The notes under the pieces were generated by a model. It was not told where the DNA came from and searched no databases. It saw only the letters and a list, made by a program, of their open reading frames with translations. DNA of 64,000 bases from positions 992,001 to 1,056,000 of the forward strand of contig CATNEN010000041.1 of assembly GCA_950097015.1 (NCBI GenBank), in the 5' to 3' direction. The DNA comes from Macrostomum hystrix. Taxonomy: Eukaryota; Animalia; Platyhelminthes. Below, one piece after another: positions 2,990 to 64,000 of the stretch; the stretch's first letter is position 1; each line of letters begins with the position of its first letter. Position numbers and translations under genes: made by a program.

Positions 2990-3585
2990 GATCAGAGTGA
3001 GTGGGATTCTAGTTGGATGGGATCAGAGTGAGTGGGATTCTAGTTGGATGGGATCGGAGTGAGTGGGATTCTAGTTGGATGGGATCAGAGTGAGTGGGAT
3101 TCTAGTTGGATGGGATCGGAGTGAGTGTGATTCAAGTAGATGGGATCAGAGTGAGTGGGATTCAAGTTAGATGGGATCGGAGTAAGTGTGATTCAAGTAG
3201 ATGGGATCGGAGTGAGTGTGATTCAAGTTGATGGGATCAGAGTGAGTGTGATTCAAGTATATGGGATCAGAGTGAGTGTGATTCAAGTAGATGGGATCAG
3301 AGTGAGTGTGATTCAAGTAGATGGGATCAGAGTGAGTGGGATTCAAGTTAGATCGGATCGGAGTAAGTGTGATTCAAGTAGATGGGATCAGAGTGAGTGT
3401 GATTCAAGTTAGATGGGATCGGAGTGAGTGTGATTCAAGTAGATGGGATCAGAGTTAGTGTGATTCAAGTAGATGGGATCAGAGTGAGTGGGATTCAAGT
3501 TAGATGGGATCGGAGTGAGTGTGATTTAAGTAGATGGGATCAGAGTGAGTGGGATTCAAGTTAGATGGGATCGGAGTGATTGGGA
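2990..3585. repeat. 30-31-bp minisatellite (GATGGGATCAGAGTGAGTGTGATTCAAGTA) between RNF32 and MIGA
   Basis: Tandem copies with two sub-variants read directly. Confidence 0.95.
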
Positions 3586-3680
3586 TTATAGTTTAATGGC
3601 ATGGGATCAAAGACTGTTGCCTCAAGGCATGTCTCGTATTGCTTGCAGACGTAGAACTCTCGAGCCGCAGTGCACCAAGA

Positions 3681-6027: not shown

Positions 6028-6759
6028 ACTCAGAATACTCAAATCTGATTTGGATCTGTCGTATTGCCCATTTATCCCAGTTATCCCATCTCCCATTCGC
6101 CCTTCCCTCAACTTTGTACCACCGGCTTTCCTCTGCCATCTGCATCTGACACACCTGTCTCATCTGCCCCTCATTCCCCACCTGAGTCAATCATGAGCTC
6201 ACTGAGCTGGAGTGTCCAGTCATATTGAGGCTAGTTCTAGTTGCCGGTAGAGATCTGACAGCTTATGCGTGCAGGCACAGTTATTTTAGATCGCATGCTA
6301 CTTTGACATTGCTAATTATTTAATTAGCTTAGTGACGTCATTCCACTGGAAGTGTTTTATTTTCTCTATTTTTATGAAGTCGCACGCACGCAGTCCCCCC
6401 CATTTTATTACTGAGAGGTGGACTCTGTTGCCATGCCTTACCAGCCTTTCGTTTTGTCCTTCTCAACCTGCGCAGCCGTGAAAGGGCCAGGCATCTTTGA
6501 GAAACTTGTTTAAAGGCATTCTGCGGAGTTCTCAGTGTCGGATCTGAATGTCCAAGAAATAGAATCTATGCTTTTTTATCTGTTTGAAAACGTGTTTCAC
6601 AATTTCAATCTAAATGTTTACAGTGAACAGTGACAAGCTTTGTCAGATCCCTAAACATTCTCTGTTAGATTTGCAGTACTGAAATATTAATGGAATCGCC
6701 GTTTCTCTTTTCATTCTTTTGAAGTAGCCCTTTAAATTAGTTTTTAAGTAACAACATTC

Positions 6760-52514: not shown

Positions 52515-55500
52515 CTACTGCCTCTTCTGCTGATGAAATCTGCTGCCGTCTCCGGCGCCGCTGCCACCTCCTCGATGATGGCCGCTCAGGGGCTGCTGGC
52601 CCCGACTATAAAGAGCCTGCCTGGCATGCTGCGGCAGCTGCTGCCTGTGGGATCCGTTGCGGCCGGACGTTGGCAGCGACTTCCTTGCCGTGTGGCCGCG
52701 AACAAAGCTGGACGCGGAGGTGACGGTGCCGGCCGCTGACACCGGGTGATCGCTGGAGCTGCGATGAAATCCGACCCCAGCGGCTGCGGCCGCGGCGGCG
52801 GCTGCGGCAGCCCAAGCAGTGGAGGACGAGGCCGATGAAGACGTAGCCGAGCGCCAGGAGTCCGTGGGAGACTGGGCCGGGTCCGAGGTCGACGCGGTTC
52901 GCTGCACAATCTGGGCGAATGTCGGGCGTCGCTCTGGCTCCAGCGCCGGGTGGCTGCAGCCGGGGTACAGCAGGTGCTGCTGCAGCGGCTGGCCGAAGCG
53001 GCCTTTTAGGGATAGGCAGGACAGCGACTCCACCGTGGCGGTGATGGATGGCGAGGCGGATGCCTCGAGGACAAGGCCGCTGACGGCATCCTCGTGGTAG
53101 TAGCCGCCGTTGGTGGCGTCCGGTGTGGCCGCAGCGGCTCGACAGTCGGCCAAGCTGAGCTGCAGCAGCTGCTCGATCACTGTCCAGTCGCGGGACCAGA
53201 GGCCGGGCAGGGCCAGGCTGAGGTGGCTGGGCTCGGCCACCAGGCGGGGCCGGAAGGCGATGCGGAGGCCGGCGGGACCGGCTGCCGGGGTCGGCGACGC
53301 CAACCAGTCGGGCATGACGAAGGTGCAGCCTGAGCCGTCGGGCGTCGGGGCAGGCAGGAGGCGGGCGGACACGATGGAGTCGCCGAATCGTAGTTGGACG
53401 GATTCCACCAGCTCGTGAGGCCCTGGGAGGCCGGGGCCGGCGGCGGAGTCGCGAACTACGGCGGCATCGACCAGGAGCTTCCGCGGACCGGGCAGGACGC
53501 GGCCGGGTCGCAGCAGGCGGTGAACGGTCAGGGTGAGAGCCACTGACAGGCTGTGGCGCTGCTGCTGCTGATGCGCCTGTGGCAAGGTGGGACAGTCCAC
53601 CCTGAGCGAGCACAGCGAGTTGTCCGCAATGGTGCCCAGCTTAGGAAAATGTCTGGGCGAGTGTTGGTTGTGTTGGGAAATTAAGGCTTATTATAAAAAA
53701 CTTCCTTCATTAATATTCCCGAACTTCGGAATACTACGGATTTGAAAATTTCGGTTCCAGAAAACCAAATCAGCAAAAACGCTTTCTGAAAAAAATGAGC
53801 TAAAATGCCATATTAAAAGATAATGAATCCATAGATCCCACCCAGCTGAAATCCATAGATCCCACCCAGCTGAAATCCATAGATCCCACCCAGCTGAAAT
53901 CCATAGATCCCACCCAGCTGAAATCCATAGATCCCACCCAGCTGAAATCCATAGATCCCACCCAGCTGAAATCCATAGATCCCACCCAGCTGAAATCCAT
54001 AGATCCCAAACAACTGAAATCCCTAGATCCCACCCAGCTGAAATCCATAGATCCCACCCAGCTGAAATCCCTAGATCCCACCCAGCTGAAATCCCTAGAT
54101 CCCACCCAGCTGAAATCCATAGATCCCACCCAGCTGCAATCCATAGATCCCACCCAGCTGAAATCCATAGATCCCACCCAGCTGAAATCCATAGATCCCA
54201 CCCAGTTGAAATCCATAGATCCCACCCAGCTGAAATCTATAGATCCCAAACAACTGAAATCCCTAGAACCCACCCAGCTGAAATCTATAGATCCCAAACA
54301 ACTGAAATCCCTAGAACCCACCCAGCTGCAATCCATAGATCCCACCCAGCTGCAATCCATAGATCCCACCCAGCTGAAATCCCTAGATCCCAAACAGCTG
54401 AAATCCCTTGATCCCAAACAACTGAAATCCCTAGATCCCAAACAACTGAAATCCCTAGATCCCAAACAGCTGAAATCCATAGATCCCACCCAGCTGAAAT
54501 CCCTAGATCCCAAACAGCTGAAATCCCTAGATCACAAACAACTGAAATCCCTAGATCCCAAACAACTGAAATCCCTAAATCCTGAGCAACTAAATTCTGA
54601 AAAAAACCAAAATGAAAAATCGCCGCACCTGTCGGCGTGGCTGATCCTGCGCAGTCGCTCCCCGGCCTCCAGAAGGTCTTTCCTGTGCCCGTAGGACTTC
54701 ACTCCCATGGCCAGCAGGTCCGGCCCGGTAAGCGACATGAAGGCAGCGCCGTCGACGCCGCGCTCGAGCATCACCCGGCCGTACTGGGCGAGGTCGCCGC
54801 CGCCGCTACCGCCCAGCCGGCCAGTCAGCCAGTGGCAGAGGTCGGCAGCTCGCCAGGCCGTCGGATCCACGGCGTTGAGCCGCAGCAGCCGCAAGTTTCC
54901 GGCCAGCTCGCTGCGCCGAACACCGTCAAGGAGGCGCCGCTGGGCGCGCAGAGCCGCCTCCGTGTGGCGCATGCGCGCCAGGGCGGCGTCCAGCCAACCG
55001 CGCCAGGCTTCGCGCTGCCGACTGAAGGCGTCCAGCGCCGCCCTCGTCTCCGGGTCGGTCAGCTTGTCCAGCTGGTGGACAATGCTCTTGAATGTTGGCC
55101 GCCTGGCCGGGTCCTCGAACCAGCACTGCTCCAGCAGCAGCGACAGGCCGGCCGGGCACTGGGAGGGCACCGGAAGGCGTTCGCCCCGCTCCACGACGGA
55201 GTACACAATCTGTAGACAGGGTAGCGGGTGCATTGGCTGGAGCTCACCGTTATAATCTCACCAATATATCAAGTACTAGATAAGATATTAAATCTCATAG
55301 TGGGCGAACAGAATCTCACCATTAGATTGGTAGATTATATACAGAATCTCACCACTAGATTGGTAGATTAGATACTGAATCTCACCACTAGATTGGTAGA
55401 TTAGATACAGAATCTCACCACTATATTGATAGATTAGATTCTGAATCTGATTGAAAAGTCTCACCCTCCGATCTCACCTGAAGCGGCTGCAGGCCTCGGA

Positions 55501-56755
55501 ACGGCACCTGCCTAGTCAGCAGCTCCCACAGCACCACGCCGTAGGACCAGGCGTCGCACGGCTTGCCGGCAGGCCGGTCGCCGCGCAGCATCTCCACAGC
55601 CATCCAGGCCGGAGTCCCGGCCAGGGTAACGCCGGAGCTGCCGAGGACAACGCGAGCAGCGCCGAAGTCGCAGATTTTGCACACAGAATGATCAGCGGAT
55701 AGTACCACATTCTTTGACTTCAGATCTCTGCGGACAGTGCGACAAAATTCAGTGAGCGTTCAGGCCCTTCAAACTGAATAAAGTATGACTTCAGATACAG
55801 GAATCATCTGAACTACATGCACAGACTGTGACTACATGGAATAGTTCGTGACGATACATTTGTTGAAGCCATGTAAAACGCAAAAGCCAAAAAAGGCTGG
55901 GCGGGAAAATGTTGATTCAAGATAGGGAGACTGGCCTCACCCGGGGCAGCTCATTGCCTTGGACACAGCAGGTAGGCTTATCTATTTGAGCGAGCTAGCT
56001 CATTGCTCCGACTCCTCATATATGCTGATTAATAAACTACACAGGCAACGGTGTCAGTTAACCTTTGAGGATCTGGGAAGGTACGGTACGAATCTGAGGA
56101 TCTGGGAAGGTACGGTACGAATCTGAGGATCTGGGAAGGTACGGTACGAATCTGAGGATAATGGAAGGTACGGTACGAATCTGAGGATAATGGAAGGTAC
56201 GGTACGAATCTGAGGATAATGGAAGGTACGGTACGAATCTGAGGATAATGGAAGGTACGGTACGAATCTGAGGATCTGAGACGGTGACGCTAAGAATTCT
56301 TACCTGAGGATCTGGCAAGATAACAGTATAAATACGACCGCAGCACACTTAACCCCTCACGTCCCTTACCTATGCACAATGGGCTGGGGCGCCTCATCGT
56401 GGAGGTAGCGAACACCGCAGGCGATCTGCTTGGCCCAGTCTAGCAGTCGCTCGGGCCCCAGATCCCGCCCGCCGTCGTGCAGATAATCGTACAGGGAGCC
56501 GCCCTCGGCTAGCTCGGACACGATGCACTGGTTGGGCCGCTGCACCACAGCGCCCAGCAGCTGAATGATGTTCCTGTGCCGCACCTGGTTCAGCATGGAA
56601 GCCTCTGACAAGTCCAGGTCCAGCAGCTTCTTGGCCGCTACCTGGCGACCGCCCTCACTTTTCCACGTGGCCCGATAGACGCTGCCCTTCGAGCCGGTGC
56701 CAAGGAGTTCATGAAACTGCAGGTCTGCATGCTGAATCTGGCGAATGCCATGCAT
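52515..56755 (-). CDS. MAP3K20: ZAK-alpha-like MAP3K (kinase, coiled coil, SAM, putative YEATS-like domain, low-complexity tail), 4 exons, ~767 aa
   Basis: Exons 56755-56370, 55727-55478, 55209-54629, 53601-52515 (2304 nt, in phase). Kinase motifs LQFHELLGTGSKGSVYRATW, VAAKK, HRDLKSKN, KICDFG, CDAWSYGVVLWELLT; SAM WRAADLCHWL..VDGAAFMSLTGPDLLAMGVKSYGHRKDLL. Minus-strand AATAAA at 52340-52345. Start assumed at 56755. Confidence 0.85.
53825..54580. repeat. 24-bp minisatellite (ATCCATAGATCCCACCCAGCTGAA) in ZAK intron 3
   Basis: About 31 copies read directly. Confidence 0.95.
55310..55440. repeat. 33-bp repeat (4 copies) in ZAK intron 2, each with GGTGAGAT on the gene strand
   Basis: GAATCTCACC at 55311, 55344, 55377, 55410. 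Confidence 0.88.
56080..56280. repeat. 29-bp minisatellite (GAGGATCTGGGAAGGTACGGTACGAATCT) in ZAK intron 1
   Basis: About 7 copies read directly. Confidence 0.92.
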
Positions 56756-58630
56756 CTGGAGTTGCGTTCCATGCGACTTTTGTGAGACGGTGAGATCATT
56801 TGAATTTGTATGAATGAATGAATGCTCAATCACTTATTAGGTTTCTAACATATATTAGGCTGACAATGAGAGCAGATGTACACACCTGTGTGAGCATGTG
56901 CCTGCATACAGTATCTGTGTGTGTTTATGTGTGTTGTTGTGTCTGTGTGCTCAGGAGCCAGTGAAATGGGCAGAATTGCCTCCTTGTTGGCTGTGTGTCT
57001 AGTGACACCAAATGTTGTGCAATTTCCCACAGCCCTCATGCAAATATTATTTTTTACAACACTTCTTGAAAACAGGTGATTATAGTTCATTTAGCAAAAA
57101 GTTATTGTCTAACTAATAGTTTAGTACAACAGAGCCTATACTCTGCTTACTTAATTTTATCTCCTCTAGCCCTTTTGATATGCTGTGGCTACCCACTGTC
57201 TACCCAGTCCTCAGTTTAATTAGCATTTAAAATATATAATGTTGAATAATTTTTCTGGGGCTATCTAGTAGCCAAAATGACTTGCTGTTGGCCAATAGGT
57301 AGTGTTACAACATACTAATGTTAAAACAGTGGTTACAATAATTTATTGGGTCTTCGCTTCACTTAAATACAATTTATTGCATTCATATTACATAAACTAC
57401 ATTATGGCCTTATTTTATAGTTCTGGTAAAGATTACTTATAATTCACCAGAATAAGCCATACTAAAATATTATTTGATATATTAAAGTTGAGTACTTAAA
57501 AATTACCAATTCTATAGAACTCTTTTTGAATATAGTCTTTGGGTGACTATTTGCTAAGTGATTTAAATTGTTTCATTTTTGTTAAGTTGCTAATCAATGC
57601 AAGTCATTAGCTATACTATAGTACTAATCTATATAGTCTATAGCCCAAGAGCTAAAATATCAGTTGGCAGATCTAGGAAATCTAAATTATAAAACCAATT
57701 ATTTTACTATTTTAATTAAATCTAGGTCAAAGCCTCTAAATATGCCTTATGCTAAATTTAATAATACAAATCTGTTTCAAATTTATTCAAATATTGGATT
57801 CCAAACTGATTTCTAAACATAAATACATAGTTTAGTTGCATACAAAAATTAAGGTTGATTTGATGATTGCTCAAGCCAGCTTATCTCCATGAATCTGCCA
57901 TAGAACAGCTTAAAAATCTAGGCAAGAAAAGAAATATACCAACGAACTAGACATAGTATATTGCAAAAAACAATTAAATATTAAATATGATTGCATATAG
58001 GATTATGAAACTTTTTAATAGTTGATTAATTTGCTAATCTGCAAAAATAGTATTTTAGGGCTATCATCTTATATTGGTGCAACACCTAATTTTAACTCAG
58101 TATTCTAGTCTCACTCGTATATTCTATTAGCCCCATGAAAAATTCAGCTATCCTGTATAGGTTCTTATTGAATATTGATGCTATATTTAGCATCCATCGA
58201 CTGAACTTAGACTGGTATGAAGAAAAAAAATTCATAAAAAACTACATCAGTACCTTAAAATTTACTGCAGTGAAAATGTAAATTTTATCAGCCACAGTCC
58301 GCGCTAGTAAAATAACTAATAAAAGCAAGAATGAGATTATATGCAGTCACGATTTAGGCGACGAAGTTGTGAGGCATGGTCAACTGCAATAAGTTTTAGC
58401 GTATCAGTCAATATTTCAAATTTTTCGCTGCTAACATCAATTCCTTTTCTCCCTTTTAACAAAATTTCTCGCAAAATGTACGGCACATAATAATTTAGAA
58501 GAAGATCGTGACAAATTAAAAAACTTTGATTATTTCATTTATATTGCATACTTGAGCTTCTTGTAATTTTGATACTTAAAGAGTTAGTTGGTATTTTCAA
58601 TATCGCATAACTGCGAGATTTTTTGCGTAC

Positions 58631-61600
58631 ATGGACTCAGACGAGGAAAGGCAAGGGACTGTAAGTGCTCACGCCTGACAACCCTTGAAATTATTAGTTT
58701 TTTTTACATATTTTTTACTTTCTTTAAATTCCTTTTATTTTACGAGACATAAGCATTATCCTCTAGCGCTCACTTCTTTCAGCGGGTCTAATTGCACAAA
58801 GTGATCAGCATAGTTTTTTATGTTGCTTGCAATACGCAGAGTTCAGTTTTAAGCAAAAATAGTTTATAACAGAACATCTGGATGGAGGACTCACAGGCAA
58901 GAATTTTGTTCTCAATTTATGTTTTAGCTTTTGTTAAAGGACTTTTGGCTTGTCGACAATTTTTTATACCTTTTACAAAAGCGTTATATAAACTTCCAAA
59001 TTACCGTAAGAAAGATTATTATGCAATACAAAATTAAGACTATTCTTGGTTTGCTTATTAGATTCTAAATTATAACGTTCAAATTTTGTTTAAAAAAGAT
59101 TTGTGCTTTTCCGTGCTTTGTTACAAAGAGACTTGAAAATTTCAATGTATCTTTTTGTCATTTGCCAGAACAAGTCCATTTTCCACAATCAGCCATTTGA
59201 TGAATCACTTCAAGTGTCTGACCCAGAGGACGTAGAGAGTAATTATGAGCCAACTCCACGCATAGGAGGAGGTGAGGATTGTGGCTTTCAGATCGCGTCC
59301 AGATACGAACGCGTACGGCGTATTTCAGTACATCGCGAACTACCTTCTGACAATGTCAGAAACTGCAAGAAAGTTTTTAACAACAATAGCTGTGCAATAC
59401 TTATCTCGATCTGAATCTCCGCTTTAGAAAAATAATTCTATTAAAAAATAATATCAATATAGTCCAGAATTGCGTTGCCTAACACCGTGTTCTGATTGCT
59501 TGCTGACATTCATCTAGGCGCTTTGCAGTGCCAAAAAGTGATCAAAGTTTTTCTAATCTACTTATTTTAGCTTTCATAGACACGCACAGCTAATTTCTGC
59601 TCGCCGCAAAATCCATTCCGAATTCGCGCAGGAAAACCTTCACAGTAACAAACCCTACGACGAGTCTATTGACATTCCCGACACTGAGGACATAACCACA
59701 CCTAGAGTGCCATCGTTCCGTAAGAATTTACTAACTAGCTAATAACTTATTTTCCTTCTTCCCACGTCACAGTCTGTCGAATCTCGCTACTCAATCCTCA
59801 GTTACCAGTAGTATATTGAGAACATACTGAACACACAATCCTCTTTTTATTGCATTGGTTGCTCGATGCCTAAATGAATGAAATTTGCGTACAAGCTCGA
59901 TAGCTGTGACTCTCACACATAAACAAAGCGTGCACCAATAGTATTTCTTCTCTTGCACCTCTGCAGCTCTATTAGCGAAATTAATTCTGTTTGCTTGCGC
60001 TTATCAAATAAATAATCTATGTGTGACTGCCTGTGTTGCACTTAATCATCTCCAGCTGCAATCTCTGTTCACTAATTGCTTTGCTCCGCCACCTGCTATT
60101 CCCATCCGGTCCTCCCCAACCCGGATTCCCATGCGAATGAGCAGCTACTCAATGTGCTCAAAAAGACGGACAAAGCGCCTCGCCTACTCATCGCAGACCC
60201 TCGCAAAACCGTAATTAGAGCCTCGGGAGCAGCTTAGGAACAGTCTTTCTATCATTTCTTCCCCTGTATTCAATCTCCCCTCGCCTCGGACTCGCATCCC
60301 CACAAACCCGCAAGTCCCAAATCTTTCCAATCTTCCGTTCCCAGTCCCCGCCGAACCCCTAATGAGCACCTGCCGTCCCTATGCACCTGAGGAAAACTGC
60401 GATCAGGGGGGGGAGTTTGGGCCGACAAGGAAATAAGAGAGGATCCGAGCGAGCCTCCGAGTTGGCAGCGATTCCACAATATCCCACTGGACAATGTCCA
60501 GTCCGAAAGAGCAGCCTCACTTGTGGTTTGGCGGCTCCACCAGGCCTGTCCCGGAGAATTTCCCAGCGGAGGAGGCGGCCAAACTGTCCCGGCCCCGCCC
60601 ACCGGCTCGGCTGAAAATTCTCGCCTCAAAAAAATCGCTACGTGAATCCACAGGACCGGGTCGAACCCCAGACAGCAGGCAGCAGCAGCAGCAGCAGCAG
60701 CATCTCAGGCCGGGCTCGGAGGAGAGCGGAAGCGGAAGAGCTCAGAGAATGGTGAGCGATTTGACAGCTTGGTTTGCAGATTCATCTAAAATTCAGCTCG
60801 GGGCTTCAATTGTGCTTAAAAATCGCTGTTTTCAACTCTTCAATGCAAAAAATGCAACTTTAGCAGCAGCAGCCGCCGCCGCCACGTGGCGCCGCGCCGG
60901 CCCACTCGCCAACCGAGGAGGACGACGACGAAGAGACTGGCACGGAGAGCGGCGAGGAGTCCGAGGACGACGATGAGACCCAGCCGATTGAGGGCGCCTA
61001 CAACCCGGAGGATTATCGCGACGTCAGCGCCAACCACCCGGACTTTGCCGAGCTGTTCGACTACATCAAACGCTACACGCCACAGCACATCGAGCTGGAC
61101 CACCGGCTGAAGCCTTTCATCCCGGACTTCATTCCAGCCGTCGGCGACATTGACGCGTTCATCAAGGTGCCGCGGCCGGACTCGAAGCCTGACCAGCTCG
61201 GATTGCGCATGCTGGACGAGCCCTGCGCCAACCAGTCCGACCCCACCGTGCTGGACCTGCAGTTGCGGGCTGTAGGAAAACTGCTGGTGTCCAAGAAGAC
61301 GCAGGTGTCCCGGGTGGAGAATGCCGAACGGAACCCCCACGCCATCGAGAAGTGGATCTCGAGCATCTCGGAGCTGCACAAGCACAAGCAGCCGCCAACT
61401 GTGAACTACTCGAAGCCGATGCCCGACATCGAGCAGCTGATGAGCGAGTGGCCGCCGGAGATTGAGGAGCTGCTCAAGGAGGTCGGCCTGCCCACCGCTG
61501 ATCTAGAGTGCGACCTGCCAGTGTTCTGCGATGTTGTCTGCGGTGAGGCCATTCTGAAAATTGTCTAGAAATATTTAGCCTTGCACACAGCGGTGCATTG

Positions 61601-62204
61601 CTTTGAATAGGCTCAATTTAACCTCTTGTATGCCTTCAAGGTGGATATTCTGAGTTGTGATATGTGACTTGCGCCTTGAAGGCGAGGCGTAAAACCTTAT
61701 AGCTTCTCGCGCGAGAGAGTGTCCTACAAAGACTTTCGGGGAGGGGGTATTCGTAGTGTGCTACAAAGACTTCAATCGGGGAGGGTGTGGTGTGCTACAA
61801 AGACTTCAATCGGGGAGGGTGTGGTGTGCTACAAAGACTTCAATCGGGGAGGGTGTGGTTTGCTACAAAGACTTCAATCGGAGAGGGTGTGGTGTGCTAC
61901 AAAGACTTCAATCGGGGAGGGTGTGGTGTGCTACAAAGACTTCAATCGGGGAGGGTGTGGTGTGCTACAAAGACTCAAATCAGATACAGCTAGAGAAACT
62001 CCACAACGTGCCTCTCCAGGTCTGCTAGACATCCCAGTCTACAAGAGCCGAGTGCAGTCGTTGCACGTGCTGTTCACGCTGTACTCGACCTTCGCGAACT
62101 CGCAGCACTTTCGCAGCCTGGCCGAAGGCAACAAGCTGGACAACCGGCTGAAGCAGGACCAGCAGCAGCAGCGGGAGAACTCAGACTATGACGGATTTAA
62201 CTGA
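58631..62204 (+). CDS. IFT46: Intraflagellar transport protein 46 (IFT-B core), at least 5 exons, ~364 aa
   Basis: Exons 58631-58660 (MDSDEERQGT), 59169-59271 (HNQPFDESLQV), 60654-60751, 60864-61542, 62020-62204, in phase. Core motifs EGAYNPEDY, LFDYIKRYTP, LKPFIPDFIPAVGDIDAFIKVPRPD, LDEPCANQSDPTVLDLQLR, WISSISELH, LLDIPV..SLHVLFTLY. The three 5' exons are less certain than the last two. Confidence 0.9.
59632..59719 (+). CDS. IFT46: Candidate alternative IFT46 exon (ENLHSNKPYDESIDIPDTEDITTPRVPSF), paralogous to exon 59169-59271
   Basis: AG at 59630-59631 and consensus donor GTAAGA at 59720; 88 nt, phase 0 to 1; repeats the NxPxDES..D.ED motif. Confidence 0.6.
61715..61975. repeat. 34-bp minisatellite (GTGCTACAAAGACTTCAATCGGGGAGGGTGTGGT) in the last IFT46 intron
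   Basis: About 7 copies read directly. Confidence 0.93.
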
Positions 62205-62944
62205 GCGCACTTGGTGCAAAGCAAAGCAAAGGGACCGATTTTGCCTTTGCCTGGTTTACTTCTATTACTGTTCTGTCATTTCCTTTCCTCAGCAGAAAAC
62301 TGGGAACTAAAATTGACACTAAATTCAATTTCGTGTCACAATTTACTTCTTGAATATATATTAATAATTATGACAGCAAGGTCATGAAAACTGCAAGTTG
62401 ACTTACAGGCGCAAAATACGGATTGTCTTGCTTGGTTAACTTTTTGTTTTATTGAACTCGAAATTAAAATAATTTATTTGTGACAGGTTATAAAATCAAG
62501 ATTAAAATTAGAGGCTAAAGGAAGAAATTTCTAAAAAATGAAAATAAATGCTGATGAGAATTGCGTAAATTTTAATTATTATATTGCTACTTAAAGTAGT
62601 GCAACCAGAAGATGGACTTTCACTATAAAAATTATGCTTTTCAAAAGCGTAGAGGTAAAGTGTTGAGGCAGTTGAACTGGTTCGGCATTCTCACAGCCGG
62701 TAATCGGAGAGCCTGCAGGATACTCGGAAATGAAACCCTGCCGGACACTTTCGGGACTTCACTCGGGAAGAAACTGGCTGGGAATTCGCACCTAAGGCTT
62801 CCAAACCGGTTCTGTTATGCCAATGAAAGCAGCGGGCTCGCTTTCGGATGCAAAGCTAGCGGAGAACTTTTCTGCAGCGAGTAACACTTTAGAAATTTTG
62901 TCATGGGCCGTTACTTTTGGTAATAAGCTGCTACTTTTGGTCAA

Positions 62945-63315
62945 AGGATGCACGTTTTGGTCATAAGCTGTAAGCTTTGGTCACGGGCTGTAAGCTTTGG
63001 TCACGGGCTGTAAGCTTTGGTCATAAGATGTAAGCTTTGGTCATAAGCTGTAAGCTTTGGTCATAAGATATAAGCTTTGGTCACGGGCTGTAAGCTTTGG
63101 TCATAAGCTGTAAGCTTTGGTCATAAGATATAAGCTTTGGTCACGGGCTGTAAGCTTTGGTCATAAGATGTAAGCTTTGGTCATAAGCTGTAAGCTTTGG
63201 TCACGGGCTGTAAGCTTTGGTCATAAGATGTAAGCTTTGGTCATAAGCTGTAAGCTTTGGTCATAAGCTGTAAGCTTTGGTCATAAGATGTAAGCTTTGG
63301 TCACGGACTGTAAGC
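62945..63315. repeat. 20-bp minisatellite (GTAAGCTTTGGTCATAAGCT, variant ..CACGGGCT)
   Basis: About 18 copies read directly. Confidence 0.93.
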
Positions 63316-63704: not shown

Positions 63705-64000
63705 TATAATCCAATCAGATAGTCTATCAGATAATCTACTAGATAATCCAATCAGATAATCTACTAGATAATCGAATCAGATAATCTACTAGATAATCCA
63801 ATCAGATAATCTACTAGATAATCCAATCAGATAATCCACTAGATAATCCAATCAGATAATCTACTAGATAATCCAATCAGATAATCTACTAGATAATCCA
63901 ATCAGATAGTCTATCAGATAATCTACTAGATAATCCAATCAGATTGTCTATCAGATAATCTACTAGATAATCCAATCAGATTGTCTATCAGATAATCTAC
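63705..64000. repeat. 25-bp minisatellite (AGATAATCTACTAGATAATCCAATC), running off the window end
   Basis: Tandem copies read directly. Confidence 0.92.

Follow-up and report, generated by a model that had tools for sequence, protein, structure and literature searches.

Can a core protein of intraflagellar transport (IFT) be produced with more than one version of the peptide to which its cargo docks, the rest of the protein being held constant? The question is raised by the IFT46 gene of the flatworm Macrostomum hystrix, which lies at 58631-62204 (+) in the stretch of 64,000 nucleotides (nt) analyzed here (positions 992,001 to 1,056,000 of contig CATNEN010000041.1, GenBank assembly GCA_950097015.1), hereafter called the window. 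In this gene the original prediction, made from the letters of the DNA, had proposed that two paralogous N-terminal exons, here called A and B, are candidates for mutually exclusive splicing. We consider it likely that the N-terminal motif of IFT46 that docks to ODA16/DAW1 is carried here by a tandemly duplicated exon, that each productive mRNA contains one version of it, and that the two variants serve to tune docking. The identity of the gene itself is given by the Pfam domain PF12317 (IFT46_B_C), which is found in exon 4 with E=3.7e-77 and 259 bits, above the gathering score of 22.2, and again in the last exon with E=2.3e-8. The closest database match is the IFT46 protein of Macrostomum lignano (PAA50422), with 96% amino-acid identity, followed by the IFT46 proteins of the remaining animals at 60-69%.

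Are A and B truly copies of each other, and could a single transcript accommodate both? The local alignment of the two encoded peptides reaches a BLOSUM62 score of 61, compared with 22.8 +/- 4.8 (maximum 55) for 5000 composition-preserving shuffles, none of which reached 61, and the two exons find each other reciprocally with tblastn at E ~2e-5. No third copy of the motif exon was detected between 55000 and 64000 in tblastn searches with Macrostomum and Capitella peptides, A and B being the only two. The coordinates, translations and phases originally predicted for exon 1 (e1), A and B all turned out to be exact, as did the expectation that A and B share the phases 0 to 1 and that each of them joins exon 3 in frame. 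Spliced models running from e1 through A (364 amino acids), from e1 through B (359) and from an alternative upstream exon, e1′, through A (359) are all open through to the stop codon ending at 62204. The lengths of A and B are not multiples of three, and either including or skipping both of them shifts the frame: a direct joint from A to B, which had been predicted to lead to an early stop, does so by adding GKPSQ, after which codon 50 of the e1-A-B model is a stop, while skipping both leads to a stop at codon 125.

The use of the two exons in RNA could be followed in assembled contigs from four runs, X1 to X4; such contigs give no isoform ratios and no proof of absence, because minor paths are dropped. 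X1 is without intron coverage and thus behaves as RNA. In this run a 212-nt contig reads 58638-58660, continues at 59632-59719/20 and then follows exon 3 to 60751, the joint from 58660 to 59632 being of the GT..AG type, which means that B is spliced in and A is skipped. In X4, where the depth is 83-97 for spliced contigs and about 8-10 for intron contigs, a 134-nt contig spans A, and a loose end behind 59272 gives the opening 27 letters of exon 3, which shows that A is spliced directly to that exon and that B has been left out. No joint from A to B was reported in the RNA contigs, at a resolution that does not extend to rare co-inclusion. Among the junctions by which the original prediction proposed to have the matter decided, 58660-59632, 59719-60654 and 59271-60654 have thus been seen and the A-to-B junction has not, although the evidence is in the form of contigs and not of the counts then envisaged. 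Mutually exclusive use of A and B finds support in the path e1-B-exon 3 of X1 and in the path A-exon 3 of X4, and the conclusion that transcripts carry one of the two exons, and not both, is a supported one.

The contigs also bear on what precedes the duplicated exons. The 134-nt contig of X4 joins 58867-58893, plus three letters shared by both sides, to 59166/9-59272, and exon 1 is uncovered in that run. The upstream piece, e1′, ends in the donor CAG/GCAAGA, so that the intron between it and A (58897-59168) is of the GC-AG type. It carries an ATG in frame with A, and an in-frame stop stands ahead of that ATG. The original prediction had exon 1 joining either A or B; this part was confirmed for B by the X1 contig, whereas in X4 it is e1′ and not e1 that precedes A. 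The support for e1′ amounts to 27-30 letters in a single contig, and no counterpart of it was found in the three M. lignano loci. It is nevertheless probably a real exon, because the joint lands exactly on the acceptor of A.

This arrangement invites the alternative that the choice is made at the start of transcription, an internal promoter producing e1′ (MEDSQ) followed by A and an upstream promoter producing e1 followed by B, which would still result in two docking variants. One would then expect A to appear behind e1′ with e1 uncovered, as in X4, and B behind e1 with A uncovered, as in X1, and the possession by e1′ of its own start codon in frame with A, closed off by the preceding stop, is in keeping with a separate transcript start. 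However, M. lignano does without e1′ and its gene models join e1 to A, so that e1 is able to pair with A, and the short run of letters that defines e1′ comes from contigs that drop minor paths, among which an e1-to-A path could lie in M. hystrix. We regard a choice made purely at the promoter as rather unlikely, and prefer the view that A and B are alternatives at the level of splicing, with a possible partial coupling to the upstream exon.

What would a switch between A and B change in the protein? In Chlamydomonas, residues 23-44 of IFT46 (CrIFT46) bind in the cleft of ODA16 with a dissociation constant (Kd) of ~1 uM; the core of the motif is 29-Nxxx(D/E)E-34, and binding is abolished by the substitution D33K or by the replacement of HDEE with AAAA, while mammalian IFT46, which is without the motif, does not bind ODA16 directly (PMC11879689). 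The N-terminus of IFT46 is furthermore required for the transport of dynein arms and ODA16 (PMC5576905). The NQPxDE/ODA16-binding motif that the original prediction had cited is therefore a real one (PMC11879689). In Macrostomum the core reads NQPFDE in A and NKPYDE in B, each time followed by S and then by an acidic, strand-like stretch, and the three core residues Asn, Asp and Glu do not vary in any sequence of our alignment (A1), A and B included. The peptide of A, HNQPFDESLQVSDPEDVESNYEPTPR, corresponds to the canonical long form. That of B, SNKPYDESIDIPDTEDITTPR, carries Lys instead of Gln beside the Asn, keeps the usual Tyr, and is five residues short before the TPR, being without the ‘AS.Y.P’ segment. 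As judged from their sequences, each exon encodes a complete, but differing, version of the predicted docking peptide. In this respect A and B resemble Chlamydomonas IFT46, each holding the whole of the equivalent N-terminal peptide with the critical Asn, Asp and Glu kept. The difference is that Chlamydomonas, like the other organisms described, has a single copy, whereas the Macrostomum peptide lies on a duplicated exon in two alternative versions, which are known from sequence.

The peptide is strongly conserved in animals, with the consensus ..NQPYDESLEV.D.EEVAS.Y.PTPR, and exactly one motif is present in 85 of 125 animal IFT46 proteins. None of the 125 has two, a count that also bears on a further alternative, namely that A and B are included in the same mRNA by way of a 20-nt bridging exon at 59518-59537 (+), which would restore the frame and yield tandem docking motifs. 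At that position, which had been pointed out originally, there is indeed an AG-N20-GT site in an open frame; yet no joint to or from it occurs in any run, direct joints from e1 to B and from A to exon 3 do occur, and the intron around it cannot be aligned between the species. Sites of this kind arise by chance: the intron between A and B has a second one, at 59277, and M. lignano has one that is unrelated. The micro-exon is thus unsupported, and tandem inclusion through it strikes us as exceedingly improbable.

Is B, then, an exon that matters, or a leftover of duplication that is rarely used and functionally irrelevant, so that the A isoform alone counts? Splicing noise of this sort would agree with the best-covered run, X4, in which A is the only one of the two to be spliced at exon depth and B appears unspliced at about one tenth of that depth, and with the absence from B of five residues otherwise conserved in animals. 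The comparison with M. lignano speaks against it. In all three gene copies of that species A (106 nt) and B (88 nt) are intact, with splice sites and phases kept, and the DNA identity of the exons to the M. lignano locus L001 is 85-93% (87% for A; 91% over 97 nt for B; 89% over 37 nt for exon 1, the counterpart of which lies at 6025-6054 of L001). The introns, in contrast, gave no alignment with L001, their identity falling within the range of shuffled controls. B differs from its M. lignano counterpart at nine nucleotides, eight of which are silent, so that one residue in 29 has changed (binomial P=2.8e-5, assuming ~21% silent sites), and A at 14, of which 10 are silent (P=7e-5); the ratios of nonsynonymous to synonymous differences (pN/pS, Nei-Gojobori) are 0.09 and 0.17 for B and A, respectively. 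Since change in A and B is mostly silent while the introns are at the level of shuffled sequence, these patterns indicate that both exons are under purifying selection at the protein level. Between species whose introns are unalignable, B has kept its frame open and has retained its phase, its splice sites and 28 of its 29 residues; with the invariant Asn, Asp and Glu in place, and with in-frame splicing in X1, it is very unlikely to be noise.

The blastn matches differ in how far they extend into the flanking introns: the match around A begins 4 nt before the acceptor, and that around B begins 27 nt before it (Table 1). The conserved stretch ahead of B is probably a branch point, a pyrimidine tract or a regulatory element. 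As side observations on the M. lignano copies, A and B are nearly identical among the three, and intron 1 differs by an indel of ~160 nt (348 nt in L001, at 6055-6402, and ~512 nt in L002 and L003). As for the gene models of that species, two (P0123 and P0124) are e1-A-exon 3 proteins, and one UniProt model, A0A1I8IRV3 (P0125), begins with B and runs into exon 3. Taken alone, the latter is weak evidence for the use of B.

Several points weigh against the view that one docking variant is chosen per transcript in a regulated fashion. The splicing of B comes from a single contig of low depth (2.6), in a run in which A is uncovered, and in X4 B is found just in one unspliced contig of 686 nt. The contigs that join e1 to B and e1′ to A each carry fewer than 31 letters upstream of the joint, and contigs cannot judge isoform ratios, low-level co-inclusion or the e1-to-A junction in M. 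hystrix; the difference in isoform between the samples X1 and X4 is suggestive only. The P0125 model is fragmentary and frame-shifted at its end (TPECH), and a faulty assembly may have given rise to it. Finally, no RNA-pairing signal common to the two species was found that would account for a regulated choice. The search for intronic pairing of the Dscam type brought up short AT-rich inverted repeats only, none of them common to both species, in what is a weak test with two species, and when the intron ends were scanned for duplex energy, a single region pair out of 15 stood out in L001 and the window gave none.

The layout of the gene is summarized in Table 1. Downstream of the duplicated pair, exon 3 is joined to exon 4 in X4 (60751 to 60864, GT..AG; 60750/1 to 60863/4 as read in the contig), and in X3 and X4 the loose ends that follow 61544 carry sequence of the last exon. 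The boundaries given earlier for exon 4 and the last exon have been replaced by those of Table 1 on the basis of the RNA contigs and a check of the model. An open frame at 60494-60653, which begins with an ATG in the intron between B and exon 3 and runs into exon 3 in the coding frame, was considered as a motif-less start and set aside as probably due to chance; the region finds no alignment in M. lignano, and its coverage is no deeper than that of introns. Base composition shifts within the gene: in the 5′ part (e1, e1′, A, B and their introns, taken from 57000 on) G+C is 27-41%, the exons of that part having 45-53%, and from ~60000 on to 62204 introns and exons have 52-65%. A tandem array occupies part of intron 4, and two satellite-like arrays lie 3′ of the gene. 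Upstream, a protein kinase gene with a SAM domain stands head to head with IFT46, and as the arrangement is identical in three of three M. lignano loci, synteny is conserved.

Table 1. Features of the IFT46 locus and its surroundings (positions in the window)
Feature	Position	Strand	Length (nt)	Phase (entry to exit)	Remarks
SAM-domain protein kinase	53800-56833	-			Upstream of IFT46
Exon 1 (e1)	58631-58660	+	30	exit 0	ATG and nine codons, MDSDEERQGT; donor GTAAGT
Alternative upstream exon (e1′)	58867-58896	+			Probable exon, 3′ end alone seen; in-frame TAA 58867; ATG 58882 (MEDSQ)
Exon A	59169-59271	+	103	0 to 1	Acceptor cag, donor gtgagg; encodes NKSIFHNQPFDESLQVSDPEDVESNYEPTPRIGG
Conserved intron stretch 5′ of B	59605-59631	+			Start of blastn match around B
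Exon B	59632-59719	+	88	0 to 1	Acceptor cag, donor gtaaga; encodes ENLHSNKPYDESIDIPDTEDITTPRVPSF
Exon 3	60654-60751	+	98	1 to 0	Common to both isoforms; CAG/Gln run inside; matches M. lignano proteins
Exon 4	60864-61542	+			Acidic linker and bulk of IFT46_B_C domain; contigs in X1-X4
Tandem array in intron 4	61756-61975				34-nt unit, 6.5 copies, 97% identical
Last exon	62020-62204	+			End of IFT46_B_C domain; TGA stop 62202-62204
Satellite-like array	62916-63303				20-nt unit, 19 copies
Satellite-like array	63706-64000				25/37-nt units, reaching the end of the window

Is the duplication peculiar to Macrostomum? A search of other genomes, which had been called for at the outset, turned up a comparable case in one annelid. 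Six-frame scans of IFT46 loci revealed a single motif exon each in Lottia, Lingula, Owenia, Tubulanus, Saccoglossus and Paramuricea, and three tandem motif exons in Capitella teleta (KB300512.1, around 223.5-224.3 kb; 3285-3393, 3490-3619 and 3780-3891 of L004), which are 109, 130 and 112 nt long. All three have pyrimidine-rich acceptors, GT donors and the phases 0 to 1, and each encodes NQPYDES...; the annotated gene model holds only the middle copy. By its sequence the cluster is a candidate for three-way mutually exclusive exons. The likeness to Macrostomum lies in the adjacency of the motif exons, in their common phase and in the shortened form of one of them, the first Capitella copy being similar to Macrostomum B in this regard. 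They differ in that Capitella is an annelid with three copies, known from genomic sequence, and Macrostomum a flatworm with two. The other spiralians sampled have one copy each, so that separate duplications in the annelid and flatworm lineages appear to be the simpler reading.

Among annotated isoforms, a second version of the motif was not seen in any of ten invertebrates (Branchiostoma, Liolophura, Babylonia, Littorina, Mya, Gigantopelta, Asterias, Apostichopus, Patella and Saccoglossus), the isoforms of which differ by cassette exons following the motif, by first exons or by loss of the motif. A word search with residues 1-40 of P0125 likewise yielded no B-type N-termini, a blank that means little, since B isoforms disappear inside clusters whose representative is an A-type protein. 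In the eel, axolotl, chiton and feather star, short IFT46 isoforms have been predicted in which translation begins at an internal Met downstream of the motif. Because such isoforms begin past the motif, the docking peptide would be an optional module in many animals, and this seems to hold well beyond flatworms. It may be mentioned as a separate observation that the isoforms with an internal Met begin with MA/S/T-D/E-x-S-D-D-E..., which matches the mammalian N-terminus (P0057, P0054, P0043 and P0131 compared with P0065, P0085, P0037 and P0130). The motif-less proteins, both of mammals and of the short isoforms, thus share with Macrostomum a docking peptide that behaves as an optional N-terminal module. 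There, however, the alternative is between presence and absence, whereas Macrostomum chooses between two versions, and skipping both from e1 shifts the frame.

Mutually exclusive exons that arose by tandem duplication, and that exclude each other through incompatibility of frame, are a well-known kind. A and B conform to it in being adjacent, homologous, of the same phase and incompatible in frame, and in that transcripts with a single one of them are seen. They depart from it in their unequal lengths and in that A can take an upstream exon of its own, and, unlike in insect Dscam, pairing between docking and selector RNA elements was not detected at the Macrostomum pair. The novelty of the locus therefore lies not in the type of exon but in its placement at a cargo-docking site of defined function, in a core protein of IFT. 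We found no published description of alternative docking exons in IFT46.

How, then, might the locus work? In the mechanism that we propose, productive mRNAs would hold exactly one of A and B, single inclusion being enforced by the incompatibility of frame and probably, in addition, by nonsense-mediated decay. In M. hystrix the choice may be coupled in part to the upstream exon or promoter, e1′ leading to A and e1 to B. Two proteins would result that have an identical IFT-B core and different docking peptides, and because they would differ in the docking peptide only, they would be expected to handle dynein arms bound through ODA16/DAW1 differently, be it in affinity, regulation or release. 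The differences between A and B would thereby tune these properties, and the tuning may depend on the kind of ciliated cell or on the stage. The suggestion of the original prediction that different docking ends may serve different types of cilia is plausible as a hypothesis. A more far-reaching proposal is that switching of IFT46 isoforms forms a regulatory layer of dynein-arm import, A and B differing in ODA16/DAW1 affinity or release or in the adaptors they engage and being deployed according to cell type or stage, with the same solution having been reached independently in Capitella; this we put forward tentatively, as an idea that may well turn out to be wrong.

Core proteins of IFT-B are usually taken to be invariant machinery, and the manner in which the loading of cargo onto IFT trains is adjusted is largely an open matter. 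The ODA16-docking peptide of IFT46, which is absent from mammals, was defined biochemically only in 2025. The Macrostomum locus offers a natural swap of the docking peptide alone, with the rest of IFT46 kept constant, and A and B constitute a natural pair of peptides that can be compared directly in binding assays. The genus moreover includes a laboratory model, M. lignano, in which RNA interference, in situ hybridization and transgenesis are possible. If the proposal of a regulatory layer reached independently in flatworm and annelid is true, the docking exon of IFT46 would be a recurrent evolutionary hot spot for diversifying the selection of cargo by IFT.

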